DNA of 64,000 bases from Octopus bimaculoides. Lineage: Eukaryota. How positions within the stretch are numbered: the first letter of the stretch is position 1; each line of letters begins with the position of its first letter. Under the pieces are notes generated by a model. That model worked only from the letters and a program-made list of their open reading frames with translations. It was not told the origin of the DNA and ran no database searches. Positions 55,286 to 63,543 of the stretch are shown here, in pieces. Both the position numbers and the translations under genes were made by a program. The DNA is taken from assembly GCF_001194135.2 (NCBI RefSeq), contig NC_068981.1, forward strand, positions 152,792,061 through 152,856,060. The letters are read 5' to 3'.

Positions 55286-55499
55286 ACACAAGCAGCAAAG
55301 ATAAGAAAGATCCTATGGGGAGAATGCCGAGGGGAAATGTAAGACATTTTGGTCCCCCCTTTATGGGTCCGCCCATGCCAGGTGATGGTTTTGAAGGGTT
55401 TCCACCACCACCACCTCCTTGTGCAATGAATCCTCCCCAAACGAGAAAGAAAAAAAACGCCGAGAAAGAGCGCTTGCAGGACGTGGAAGGCGAACCTAG
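55286..55499 (+). CDS. Exon of transglutaminase N-terminal extension: Pro/Met/Gly-rich then basic/acidic (DTSSKDKKDPMGRMPRG...PPPPPPCAMNPPQ...EGEP)
   Basis: Acceptor gatattcttccAG (55284-55285), donor AG|GTGATT (55500). 214 nt, phase 1 in and phase 2 out. The 138-nt intron rejoins in frame (AG+A=Arg) to the next exon. Confidence 0.85.
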
Positions 55500-55637
55500 G
55501 TGATTATGACTTATCGTAATAAATACTTTATGACAAACTTTCACAATTGATCAGAACTTCTATGCAATATTTTTTTAATGTGAAGGATGAGAGGTATTTT
55601 TTTAATGGATAGTACATGTATGGTTGTATTTTCTTAG

Positions 55638-56209
55638 ATATGAGGATAATACAGAGAAACGACCTAAAAGCCCGGCAGCGACGCAGGAACGAAAATCGGA
55701 GGCCAAAGAAAAGGATGTAAGAGAACCCAGGCAAGAAAATCACCATAACAGAAATGATCCCTGTGACAAACAAAGTGATGTTGGCAGTCAACATCGAGAT
55801 TCTTCTGCTTTTGACACTGAATCAAAGTTTTCGGATTTAGAGAAGAGTAATAGATTTTACCCTTATCCAGAATTCGACAGGCATGGTATGATGCCTCCAT
55901 TTGGTATGATGCCTATGGGTTACGGTCCTCCTGACGGCATGAGACCTCCAGTGTATATGAATTATCCAGAAAAGCCTGTAGATATGTCTCGCATGACAAT
56001 GGATTTCGAAGGCAACTACATGGACAATAATGGACAATTCATGGATCCCTTAGATATGCAACAGCATAACGAAATGGATCTTCCTAGGGAGAATATGAAC
56101 TTCCGTCCTCCATATATGGACCAATTTCATGGAGATATGGATGGTTGTGTGGATATACCTCCCATGGAAATGAAACGTTACACTCAAAGACGGAAAGATG
56201 GGTTTGATG
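55638..56209 (+). CDS. Exon carrying a reflectin motif (YMNYPEKPVDMSRMTMDFEGNYMDNNGQFMDP, 55954-56049) in a charged then Met/Pro-rich segment
   Basis: Acceptor gtattttcttAG (55636-55637), consensus donor G|GTAAGT (56210-56215). 572 nt open, phase 2 in and phase 1 out. Motif is 13/22 identical, without gaps, to the N-motif of the reflectin at 2730-1633. Confidence 0.88.
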
Positions 56210-58684
56210 GTAAGTAGGAAAGAAATCCATTAAATTGTATGGTGTCTCCTTAATATAATTCATGCTTGCACATATAGACACACTTAAATTGCAAACACAG
56301 AAAACCCTTGGGATACAAACTATACATACATACATACATACATACATACATACATACATACATACATACATATATATATATATATATATANNNNNNNNNN
56401 NNNNNNNNNNNNNNNNNNNNNNNNNNNNNNNNNNNNNNNNNNNNNNNNNNNNNNNNNNNNNNNNNNNNNNNNNNNNNNNNNNNNNNNNNNNNNNNNNNNN
56501 NNNNNNNNNNNNNNNNNNNNNNNNNNNNNNNNNNNNNNNNNNNNNNNNNNNNNNNNNNNNNNNNNNNNNNNNNNNNNNNNNNNNNNNNNNNNNNNNNNNN
56601 NNNNNNNNNNNNNNNNNNNNNNNNNNNNNNNNNNNNNNNNNNNNNNNNNNNNNNNNNNNNNNNNNNATAGTAGAAAGAATTATTATTATTATTATTATTA
56701 TTATTATTTTAAAAACAGTTTGATACAGCACCATGTAACTTAAAGTTTCTTAGGCTAGTTACAGGAACCTAGCTCGTCATGCTCAGAGGACGAGCTAGGT
56801 TCTCGCGATGAGCCTACGAAACCTTAACCCTTATAGGGTCGAATCAAACGGTTTTTTTTTTTAATAATAATTTATATAACTCCTACCAAAAGTGTTAAGG
56901 GTCTCTTACTTTCGCTTGTCCACTTACTCGTATGTATGTATATATGTATGTATGTATGTATGTATATATGTATGTATGTATGTATGTGTGTGTGTGTGTG
57001 TGTGTGTGTGTGTGTGTGTGTGTGTGTGTGTGTNNNNNNNNNNNNNNNNNNNNNNNNNNNNNNNNNNNNNNNNNNNNNNNNNNNNNNNNNNNNNNNNNNN
57101 NNNNNNNNNNNNNNNNNNNNNNNNNNNNNNNNNNNNNNNNNNNNNNNNNNNNNNNNNNNNNNNNNNNNNNNNNNNNNNNNNNNGTGTGTGTGTGTGTGTG
57201 TGTGTGTGTGTGTTTATAAACACTGTTACTTAAGTTTCGTAAAATGTTCCTGGAAGTCTTAACTATTTCATAAAATCTTCCCGTAAAAGGAAAGAAGAGG
57301 AATCATACAACAACAATATATAAATATATAAGTATATTTAAGTATATAAGTATATAAATGAATTAAGCATCAGGGTCTTACTTAATAAAGAGATGGTAAT
57401 AAAGCGTGTAAATAAATATTCATTCTCTAATGTGCCTATGCATGTTCGAAAAAAAACTACTTCTGATGTTATAGCTAACGATTTATTTATATGCAATACT
57501 TTTCATTTATTTATAATTACGCAAAGAAAAATTATATAAATGATAATATAGTAGTGTATTAATATAATGGTGATATATAATAACTGCAGGCTGATATACT
57601 CATATGCACAAAATATAGTAAATTTTTCAGTCATAAAATTTATACAATATTCGTAAGCCTATTTGTGACAAAGGTCGCGTTTCCATTACGGCTTAAAATG
57701 ATCAGACTCTAAGAGAAATCGTCCGATAATTGCCATTTGAATGGGAATATTATTTTCACTATAAAACACATATTGCTAGGTTCATACCACCCCTTTGAGA
57801 CCCAACTACAGTCTAGCTGAAAAATATAGACTAACTCATAAGTAATATAAACGTTCTAAATTCAGTGGGGGCGTTAATGAAGATGTTAATTTAATGTGTT
57901 AAACTTATATTTATTAATGTATATCGAATTATACATAGATATATTAAAGATTTACACAAATATAAGAGTTAGAACTTGTGATCCGCATGTGGAACTTTTT
58001 CTTAGGAAATTTTTGCCCGCCGCACTAAAAAGTTTCCCCGACCCTGGTTTAGAGTAGCTAACAAAAAACTGTTCCTTAGTTTATCGGAGGGAGAATTCCG
58101 TAAAAAATATGAATAGAAACTTAGCTACGATAACTACAACCTATATTACCTCATAGATATAGAGTTAAGTTATAGTAATGGATATCAAAATATTACTAAG
58201 TTTTTCATTTATATATATATATATATATATATATATATATATAGTCAATTCACATGAACAATCAATTCAAATAAACGAGTGAAATTAACGGAAAACAAGA
58301 TGATGTGCACAAAAAATGTATTAGCTTGATGCTCGGTGAAAAGAGAGAAAGGGAACATTCCAAAGAAGGAAAAGAAATCGCCAACAGCACGTGTGTAATT
58401 ACATTGTTGATGTTTATGTGTGTCTGTTTATATGCGTATATACTTGTGCATGTGCACACTCACATGTGCACACTCACATGTGCACAAATTTCTCTTTGTT
58501 ACAGTTTTCGTTTGGCCATATCAGTCATCTGAAAAGGCGTGAGCTTGCAGAAACTCAAGCATAATTATTATCACTAAACCCGTTAACTTAAATATTCTTT
58601 TCTGTTAGTACTGAGTACTTTTTCACCCATTCGTTCTTATATTTAAACGACTTGTGTGCATGTATGTGTTTCTGGGTGTGGTTT

Positions 58685-62835: not shown

Positions 62836-63288
62836 ATTATGTACATTATTTACAATTGACGGAGATTTGTCCCCATCTTGTTTGCTGTTAGCACAACGTT
62901 TTGGCTGATATACCCTCCAGCCTCCAGGTGTTTTGGGGAAATTTCGAACTTGGATTCTCATTCCTAAGGTATTTTTCGATGTTATTATTATTATTATTAT
63001 TATTATTATTCAGGTCACTACCTGGAATCGAACTCGGAATCTTGAAGTTAGTAGTCCGCGCTCTTAACCCCAAGATTCCAAGTTCGATTCCAGGCAGTGA
63101 CCTGAATAATAATAATAATAATAATAATAATGATAATAATAATAGAAAATACCTTAGGAATGAGATCCCAGGTTCGAAATTTCCCCAAGACACCTGATGA
63201 AGGCTGGAGGGTATATCAGCTGAAACGTTGTGTTAACAACAAACAAGATGAGGACAAATATCCGTTAATTGTAAATAATGTAAATAAT
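62836..63288. repeat. Long imperfect palindrome: two head-to-head copies of a Penelope-like/tRNA-headed repeat with (AAT)n; arms 62836-63044 and 63071-63288, 26-nt spacer
   Basis: The arms are reverse complements, e.g. TTCAGGTCACTACCTGGAATCGAACTCGGAATCTTG vs CAAGATTCCAAGTTCGATTCCAGGCAGTGACCTGAA. Confidence 0.92.
63189..63234 (+). ncRNA. Minimal type-I hammerhead ribozyme motif of the Penelope-element type
   Basis: GACAC-CTGATGA-A-GGCTG-loop-CAGCT-GAAA-C-G-T-T-GTGTT: stem I GACAC/GTGTT, intact CUGAUGA and GAAA core, stem II GGCTG/CAGCT, loopless stem III AC/GT, GUU cleavage triplet. Confidence 0.6.
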
Positions 63289-63421
63289 AGATATCTTATT
63301 TATGTATTCTTACCAATGCCATCCTCCTCCTCGTCTTCCTCCTTTATCCACGTCTATCTATTTCTGTCTCTTCTTTCTGTCAACATGTCTATATTTCAGT
63401 ATAAATTGTTATTCTTTCCAG

Positions 63422-63543
63422 CTGATCAAGTATACATGGAAGATAAAGACCTCCTCTATGAATATGTGCTAAATGACCATGGACACATATTTCAAGGAAG
63501 CGGATGTTCTTCCGTTTACCAGAAACCCTGGAATTATGGGCAG
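63422..63543 (+). CDS. Transglutaminase exon, start of catalytic core (TDQVYMEDKDLLYEYVLNDHGHIFQGSG...KPWNYGQ); gene continues beyond the window
   Basis: Conserved D.VY, EYVLN..G.I..G and PWN.GQ motifs. Acceptor ttattctttccAG, donor CAG|GTATGC (63544). The catalytic GQCWVF Cys lies downstream and is not in the window. Confidence 0.95.

Follow-up and report, generated by a model that had tools for sequence, protein, structure and literature searches.

We analysed a 64,000-nucleotide stretch of Octopus bimaculoides DNA (chromosome CM046601.1, ~152.79-152.86 Mb, assembly GCA_001194135.2), which also carries a reflectin open reading frame (ORF). The whole stretch is called the window here. We found that the window almost certainly carries the 5' half of one transglutaminase gene with a reflectin-motif N-terminal extension. 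The extension comprises 297 residues encoded by exons 1B, 2 and 3, and a phase-1 intron lies directly before the enzyme domain.

Gene model and continuity across intron 3

Six exons were joined through GT-AG introns with compatible phases, and the model rebuilt from the window DNA gave 494 codons with zero stops. The 494-residue translation was 100% identical to residues 1-494 of the RefSeq protein XP_014779607.1 (1006 amino acids, isoform X1). The first-pass annotation of this DNA had proposed the same six-exon, 494-codon model with GT-AG introns, and it was reproduced exactly; its further claim that the extension is spliced in frame to the transglutaminase as one gene agrees residue for residue with isoform X1. 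The exon set of that annotation stands, and a further first coding exon (exon A), absent from its account, has to be added. Residues 495-1006, including the catalytic core, are encoded beyond the window. We also considered whether the gene was unannotated, and rejected this because a RefSeq protein cluster of ~95-100% identity exists. The exons, and the intron that separates extension and enzyme, are as follows.

25740-25821, plus strand: alternative first coding exon A, MNTILKYFSKKMSSETKPMANETKPAE, then GAA G/gtaagc, phase 1 (tblastn of XP_052827500.1, 100% over 27 amino acids)
52126-52231, plus strand: first coding exon B (isoform X1), MDKRHQQGSTDRLKHWPFLNYFNRSRNMPPVCPPP, phase-1 donor
55286-55499, plus strand: exon 2, the portion of the extension rich in proline; internal MGRMPRGN is the start of isoform X2
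55638-56209, plus strand: exon 3, 190 codons, ends ...RRKDGFD G/GTAAGT, phase-1 donor
56210-60706, plus strand: intron 3, ~4.5 kb; contains a Tc1/mariner-like element, simple repeats and the three assembly gaps
60707-60925, plus strand: exon 4, first transglutaminase beta-sandwich exon (E-MSPQELMENG...LIVRRGQPF...), phase-1 acceptor
61144-61392, plus strand: exon 5, transglutaminase N-domain (window translation, RefSeq match)
63422-63543, plus strand: exon 6, ends ...KPWNYGQ (window translation, RefSeq match)

The open frame of every exon shuts within a few codons past its splice sites. The frame of exon 3 is open only at 55606-56217, and reading through its donor leads to a stop after two codons (…GFDGK, then the stop). 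Within exon 3, a stretch rich in lysine and glutamate is followed by an acidic stretch rich in methionine, aspartate and proline, which holds the motif.

The runs of N in the window are located at 56391-56666 (gap 1), 57034-57183 (gap 2) and 59547-59567 (gap 3). Three gaps between exons 3 and 4 bring in the alternative that two separate genes have been joined by mis-scaffolding or by read-through in gene prediction. The stop two codons past the exon-3 donor fits this alternative, as do the 195-residue ORF given by gene callers on short contigs (P0241-P0243) and the position of ATG 60709, only 2 nt inside exon 4. However, all three gaps are inside intron 3, and therefore the reading frame crosses none of them; the one point at issue is whether the two halves share a locus. 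Gap 2 has (GT)n flanks on both sides and gap 3 is internal to one Tc1/mariner-like element with 30-nt terminal inverted repeats; both are internally consistent. Gap 1 has differing simple repeats on its left and right, and the window by itself is no proof of continuity there. Because these flanks are unlike, continuity at gap 1 rests on comparative evidence, which settles it.

The junction between the aspartate ending exon 3 and the glutamate opening the enzyme is found without extra residues in the proteins of O. sinensis, O. vulgaris and Argonauta hians, and the long forms all read …RR(K/R)DG(F/Y)D-E-MSPQ(E/Q)L… across it. It is supported by the gene models of four octopod genomes and by decapodiform mRNAs in which extension and enzyme share one ORF. 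A gapless decapodiform genomic contig (L007) carries the homologous exon, which ends …GGA G/GTGAGT with the identical phase-1 boundary. The RRKD of exon 3 also aligns with the leader directly upstream of the beta-sandwich in two paralogs, P0001 and P0002. No assembled octopus mRNA across the junction was seen in the Logan-derived collection, which gave only unspliced contigs. The 195-residue ORFs come from such unspliced contigs, which include intron 2, and give no evidence of a terminal exon; exon 3 as a terminal exon was rejected on this ground. We thus regard an artefactual joining as extremely improbable.

The first-pass annotation had itself named outcomes that would separate the two parts. 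One was the splicing of exon 3 to a different terminal exon, for example one hidden in the gaps. Another was an enzyme always starting at ATG 60709; this start was rejected for the short enzyme, since the annotated short isoform begins at exon 25740-25821. The placement of both parts on one locus is borne out by the shared junction in octopod orthologs and by the single ORF of the decapodiform mRNA.

Two repeat structures were observed in the introns. The element in intron 3 has the following position.

59063-60443, intron 3: Tc1/mariner-like element, terminal inverted repeats 59063-59092 and 60414-60443, 30 nt, 100% complementary

Stops interrupt its transposase frame; the short assembly gap lies within the element, and an internal tandem array of a ~17-nt unit (agtgaagttgaacatct) is found at ~60003-60150. 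Intron 5 holds a near-palindrome of ~450 nt (62836-63288), ~130 nt upstream of exon 6, in which inverted repeats of 91, 86 and 67 nt with 88-94% complementarity are nested. By appearance it is an insertion like a foldback element or a miniature inverted-repeat transposable element.

Enzyme, isoforms and conservation

Exons 4-6 match the Pfam family Transglut_N (PF00868, E 1.7e-27, above the gathering score). Full-length XP_014779607.1 also hits the PF01841 core and the PF00927 C-terminal domains, whose exons lie outside the window. With isoform X3 as query, the enzyme body aligns nearly end to end with human factor XIII-A (FXIII-A; E 9e-115), and also with the structures of TGM3 and TGM2. YGQCWVF, WNFHVWND and GWQAVDPTPQE are present in the proteins of O. 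bimaculoides, O. sinensis and A. hians and in a 922-residue protein described below (P0118). The catalytic Cys, His and Asp are kept in every extension-bearing ortholog and align to the FXIII-A triad, as read from the RefSeq protein and not from the window DNA. The Cys-His-Asp triad around GQCWVF, which the first-pass annotation had marked for checking, is therefore intact in the full-length RefSeq protein. Judged from these matches, the enzyme is a four-domain transglutaminase of the animal type and belongs to the factor XIII-A / TGM1 / hemocyte transglutaminase family, whose features include a Ca2+-dependent protein-glutamine gamma-glutamyltransferase activity.

The paralogs P0001 and P0002 (L001-L003) form a decapodiform clade; the P0001 cluster includes the 'TGM1' of Sepia/Acanthosepion pharaonis (CAE1272223.1). 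This clade is without the extension, with in-frame stops upstream of MYRRPG. In place of the catalytic Cys-Trp it has Asp-Phe (YGQDFVF) or Asp-Tyr (YGQDYVF), with His and Asp kept, and the sequence suggests a pseudoenzyme in the manner of band 4.2. P0001 and P0002 were rejected as extension-less orthologs on account of their separate clade, their identity (53% vs 68%) and the change from Cys to Asp.

Three isoforms of the gene are annotated. Isoform X1 (XP_014779607.1 / 08 / 09) has 1006 amino acids, and isoform X2 (XP_014779610.1) has 961 and starts at MGRMPRGN in exon 2. Isoform X3 (XP_052827500.1, 736 amino acids) begins with MNTILKYFSKKMSSETKPMANETKPAE and runs straight into EMSPQEL, exon A being spliced to 60707. 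Exons 2 and 3 sum to 786 nt and form a phase 1-1 cassette; therefore its inclusion or skipping leaves the frame unchanged. The O. vulgaris homolog of exon A joins either exon 2, in the 992-residue form, or exon 4, in the 729-residue form (CAI9716228.1, 992; CAI9716229.1, 729; CAI9716230.1, 1007 amino acids). Thus some products of the gene carry the reflectin-motif tail on the enzyme and others lack it, and the extension is optional. Neither an enzyme that is always fused nor one that always starts at ATG 60709, the two pictures set against each other in the first-pass annotation, is complete: X1 and X2 carry the extension, and X3 skips the cassette.

We then compared the protein across cephalopods. 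The ortholog of O. sinensis (XP_029640363.1) has 1007 amino acids and that of A. hians (GAB1597766.1) has 981. P0118 is a 922-residue ORF on a 3.4-kb Logan mRNA contig (L005), with cluster-mates on >20 contigs. The frame of L005 is open further upstream to MSKPHGHRTFHGLKNWPLFSYFHRSRGMP, with stops before it, giving ~980 encoded amino acids; the mRNA contains an exon-1 homolog, two reflectin-type motifs and the enzyme, in this order and in one ORF. Esc_cluster_14373p of Euprymna scolopes has the same layout of extension plus enzyme. The presence of the architecture in Octopus, Argonauta and decapodiforms indicates that it is at least as old as the ancestor from which octopuses and squids diverged.

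Conservation is uneven along the protein. Between octopus and Euprymna, identity is 51% (18/35) in the exon-1 block, 62% in the motif, 21% in the rest of the tail and 71% in the enzyme N-domain. Octopods have one motif copy, the one nearer the enzyme, and decapodiforms have two; the extra upstream copy, ME(S/C)MSKMTMD.QGRYIDS.G..VDP, is decayed in octopods. Between O. bimaculoides and a second octopus sequence (L006), exons 2-3 share 94% identity, with one in-frame 6-nt indel. Overall, the tail is under weak constraint, and only on the motif is constraint strong.

Such a pattern raises the alternative that the cassette is a tolerated leftover, a reflectin-like fragment captured from the neighbouring cluster; the short isoform would then be the working form, and transcripts with the cassette would be minor ones. 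The annotation of a cassette-skipping short isoform in both O. bimaculoides and O. vulgaris is in accord with this, as are a rough exon-3 ratio of nonsynonymous to synonymous rates of ~0.5 between close octopuses, the in-frame indel, the loss in octopods of the first motif copy kept in decapodiforms, and the lack of an assembled octopus junction mRNA in the Logan-derived collection. However, octopods and decapodiforms alike have kept the ORF, the motif, the exon-1 block and the phase-1 boundary, and a neutral insert of 300 codons would not stay open for so long. Conservation of the motif is close to that of the enzyme N-domain (62% vs 71%), and what assembles from decapodiform transcripts is the long form, on >20 contigs. 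We therefore consider a mere leftover very unlikely.

Reflectin-type motif, tail and neighbouring reflectin gene

The motif was located in exon 3 at the following positions.

55984-56049, plus strand: motif MSRMTMDFEGNYMDNNGQFMDP, exon 3
55963-56049, plus strand: motif with PEK prefix, YPEKPVDMSRMTMDFEGNYMDNNGQFMDP (regular-expression scan)

It is identical to the motif of the window reflectin at 13/22 positions, the ungapped match noted before to the N-motif being reproduced, and to the squid consensus (MEPMSRMTMDFQGRYMDSQGRMVDP) at 15/22. A phmmer search of exon 3 against 1.84 billion protein representatives gave eight proteins at E ≤ 0.001. The reflectins among them were P0099 (E 2.7e-15), which shares a 90% cluster with the O. 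bimaculoides reflectin XP_014779611.1, P0102 (E 1.5e-8) and P0104 (E 6.6e-6). P0105, the homologous exon of a decapodiform, and two unrelated repeat proteins were also found. With an E value of 2.7e-15 among 1.8 billion proteins, the likeness is not due to chance, and by this sequence measure the exon-3 motif is truly of reflectin type. In a six-frame regular-expression scan, the tandem repeat pattern [M/F]D(X)5MD(X)5MD(X)3-4 gave one loose match in the extension vs several in the reflectin gene. The Pfam search gave no match for the 297-residue extension.

The remaining two hits, large cephalopod proteins with related units, place the motif type in several non-canonical protein settings: P0100 (1103 amino acids, ENA) and P0106 (1270 amino acids, Logan; the same as E. 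scolopes Esc_cluster_2805p), which each have five tandem PERYMDLSRYTMDFQGRFMD..G...DP units and in which no Pfam domain was found by Pfam search. The transglutaminase motif is closer to these hybrid units (up to 17/28) and to its decapodiform counterparts (17-18/28) than to canonical internal repeats of reflectins (12-13/28).

The protein is already present in RefSeq and in UniProt (A0A0L8GN62) as hemocyte protein-glutamine gamma-glutamyltransferase isoform X1; XP_014779607.1 is the same gene with identical sequence, and its database name mentions the enzyme only. Armendarez et al. 2026 (bioRxiv 10.64898/2026.04.14.718489) gathered 141 "reflectin sequences" by BLAST, and their Table S1 lists Esc_cluster_14373p, Esc_cluster_12890p and OctVul6B023351P2 as uncharacterized reflectins. 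These three sequences are orthologs of the octopus gene, with LIVRRGQPF, GQCWVF and the motif. The words transglutaminase, enzyme and fusion are absent from the text of that preprint. Our literature searches, including full-text searches of the library used, found no cephalopod paper that pairs reflectin with transglutaminase, some of the results being swamped by "reflecting". The combination of enzyme and reflectin motif thus appears to be undiscussed. On novelty, then, the suggestion of the first-pass annotation divides: the sequence is not new, and what appears to be undescribed is that the extension is a reflectin-type module.

The composition of the tail was calculated in parts. Residues 108-180 of the extension contain 11% lysine and 12% glutamate (isoelectric point, pI, 5.9), and residues 181-297 contain 16% methionine, 12% aspartate and 15% proline (pI 4.6). 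The whole extension has 3% tyrosine, 7% lysine, 7% glutamate and 1% cysteine with a pI of 6.2, vs 20% tyrosine, 1% lysine and a pI of 8.4 for the window reflectin. The typical reflectin composition (very high in tyrosine, methionine and arginine, nearly devoid of alanine, isoleucine, leucine and lysine, net cationic) is therefore not that of the extension; enrichment in methionine and aspartate is common to both.

For the 992-residue O. vulgaris form, AlphaFold2 with a 30-sequence alignment gave an enzyme body with a predicted local distance difference test score (pLDDT) of ~90 and a predicted template modelling score of 0.71. Tail pLDDT was <50 (residues 1-280) except for residues 211-230, at 53-59, which correspond to the motif region 209-230. 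The extension of ~300 residues is thus predicted to be disordered, with the motif as the only part of raised confidence. No signal sequence was detectable in the extension, and a TGM1-like cysteine cluster is absent from it (cysteine, 1%). An RRK(D) patch precedes the enzyme domain in octopods and in P0001 and P0002, and is not found in Euprymna or P0118.

These features can also be read in another way. The tail may be functional and yet unrelated to reflectin assemblies, either as a regulatory or autoinhibitory pro-region or as a general tail for self-association or condensates; the motif would then be a widespread coleoid interaction module, and the parallels would be the FXIII-A activation peptide and the N-terminal anchor of TGM1. 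N-terminal extensions from extra 5' exons are known in TGM1 and F13A1. The motif type occurs five times each in P0100 and P0106, and also in several other Euprymna proteins of the preprint table. The basic RRK(D/E) patch before the beta-sandwich is common to P0001 and P0002 and could be a processing site. However, canonical reflectins are what the motif matches best, the gene adjoins a reflectin gene, and the RRK patch is missing in Euprymna and P0118. In the AlphaFold2 model the tail was not docked with confidence against the enzyme, which with such a shallow alignment is weak evidence either way. A tail unrelated to reflectins, the main rival reading, is in our view fairly unlikely.

The adjoining reflectin gene is located at the start of the window.

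1633-2730, minus strand: intronless reflectin gene, 365 amino acids, head-to-head with the transglutaminase gene, 23 kb from exon A

It is listed as Ocbimv22031000m in Table S1 (bioRxiv 10.64898/2026.04.14.718489). No Pfam family is on record for it. With a reflectin lacking a Pfam family and an extension lacking a Pfam match, automatic annotation cannot flag the motif.

A canonical O. bimaculoides reflectin on the same chromosome, located outside the window (P0111 / XP_014779611.1), bears the RefSeq name 'TBC1 domain family member 5 homolog A'. This name is evidently a misnomer, presumably caused by the lack of a reflectin profile for automatic naming. Two further long ORFs, at 22809-23465 and 31711-32334, look transposon-derived. 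One contains …IYCISCSFCASLYIGQTGRRL… and may resemble a GIY-YIG nuclease; the other contains …TAGPDGFPAILLK…, with a possible likeness to the beginning of a reverse transcriptase. Neither had a Pfam hit at E ≤ 0.01.

The hexapeptide NRSRNM in exon 1B (52186-52212) is the same as residues 2-7 of the reflectin XP_014779611.1 (MNRSRNMFRN…) of the neighbouring cluster. This match was reached by only 6 of 20000 composition-preserving shuffles, in a post hoc comparison with one reflectin. NRSRNM and the motif order together give a hint that the transglutaminase tail may be colinear with the reflectin N-terminus. It may be supposed that this locus is the common source of the tail and of the reflectins, because an NRSRNM-type block, the N-motif (in decapodiforms) and a PER.MDMS-type repeat come in reflectin N-terminal order, and because these blocks sit on coleoid-conserved, intron-containing exons, with the intronless reflectin cluster head-to-head to the gene. 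We hold such a shared origin to be unlikely. If it were true, reflectins would have been born from the 5' exons of this gene, or the enzyme gene would have captured a proto-reflectin on the coleoid stem. In that case covalent modification of reflectin assemblies would be the dedicated task of the enzyme, which would lock them or tune their charge, for example to set static reflectors apart from tunable ones.

Possible role and comparison with known systems

The gene encodes a real transglutaminase with a reflectin-motif tail, and we propose that its long isoform is recruited to modify reflectin assemblies. Structure and mechanism taken jointly have, in our estimate, about an even chance of being right. 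The functional part, that is, recruitment into reflectin assemblies and modification of glutamine there, is offered tentatively and falls a little short of even. The motif, as a module that also drives reflectin self-association, would bring the long isoform into the condensates or platelets that reflectins form in the cytoplasm of reflective cells. Once activated by Ca2+, the enzyme could there modify glutamine residues, which occur in reflectin repeats. One possible product is cross-linking of these glutamines, perhaps to the lysine-rich part of the enzyme's own tail or to other proteins; these partners are proposed because reflectins almost lack lysine. Amine attachment, or deamidation of glutamine that adds negative charge, would be alternative chemistries. 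The assembly might in this way be covalently stabilised or charge-tuned, and the short isoform would supply untargeted enzyme. Reflectin assembly is governed by charge neutralisation, and its current account is one of reversible charge neutralisation and self-association. We know of no discussion so far of an enzyme physically tied to reflectin motifs.

Several observations weigh against this proposal. The catalytic core was assessed on the RefSeq protein only and lies outside the window. The octopus protein has a single motif copy, and its tail is acidic and poor in tyrosine, unlike reflectins. The motif type is also found by phmmer of exon 3 in P0100 and P0106, which are not reflectins, and may serve coleoids as a general module for assembly and not as an address specific to reflectins. 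Between O. bimaculoides and L006, codon differences in exon 3 number 21 nonsynonymous vs 12 synonymous. Moreover, reflectins are nearly free of lysine, which makes classical cross-linking of glutamine to lysine among reflectins unlikely.

The locus offers a concrete candidate for an enzyme that controls reflectin materials covalently, whether by deamidation, amine attachment or cross-linking, because a transglutaminase with an intact active site and the motif predates the octopus-squid split, the cassette is optional and a reflectin gene adjoins. It also bears on the source of the reflectin motif. Nautilus is not known to have reflectins. In addition, BLAST-based reflectin catalogues absorb these enzymes, which inflates apparent reflectin diversity, notably in the low domain alignment of octopus sequences.

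In comparison with reflectins, the tail shares PE(K/R)..DMSR.TMDF.G.Y.D..G....P, which matches both the N-terminal motif and the PER.MDMS start of the internal repeats. Flanks rich in methionine and aspartate and a restriction to cephalopods are also common to both, and the genes adjoin. However, the tail has one motif where reflectins have the N-motif and 3-6 repeats, and its tyrosine content is 3-7% vs 20%. It is acidic and rich in lysine and glutamate, whereas the reflectin is cationic. The gene is multi-exon and encodes 961-1006 amino acids with an enzyme attached, and the neighbouring reflectin is one uninterrupted ORF. The transglutaminase protein is not a reflectin by the defining features of that family.

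The four-domain fold and the catalytic triad are common to TGM1, FXIII-A and the octopus enzyme, as is an extra N-terminal segment from separate 5' exons. The TGM1 extension is a cysteine-cluster lipid anchor, and the F13A extension is an activation peptide cleaved by thrombin. The octopus tail differs in being ~300 residues long, disordered, acidic and optional, in carrying a reflectin-type motif, and in having no TGM1-like cysteine cluster. Another parallel is given by TG-A and TG-B of Drosophila, in which alternative 5' exons of one transglutaminase gene yield isoforms that differ only N-terminally, and the difference is presumed to set location. In the fly this difference is a short acylated N-terminus, whereas in the octopus it is a disordered motif cassette of 260-300 residues.

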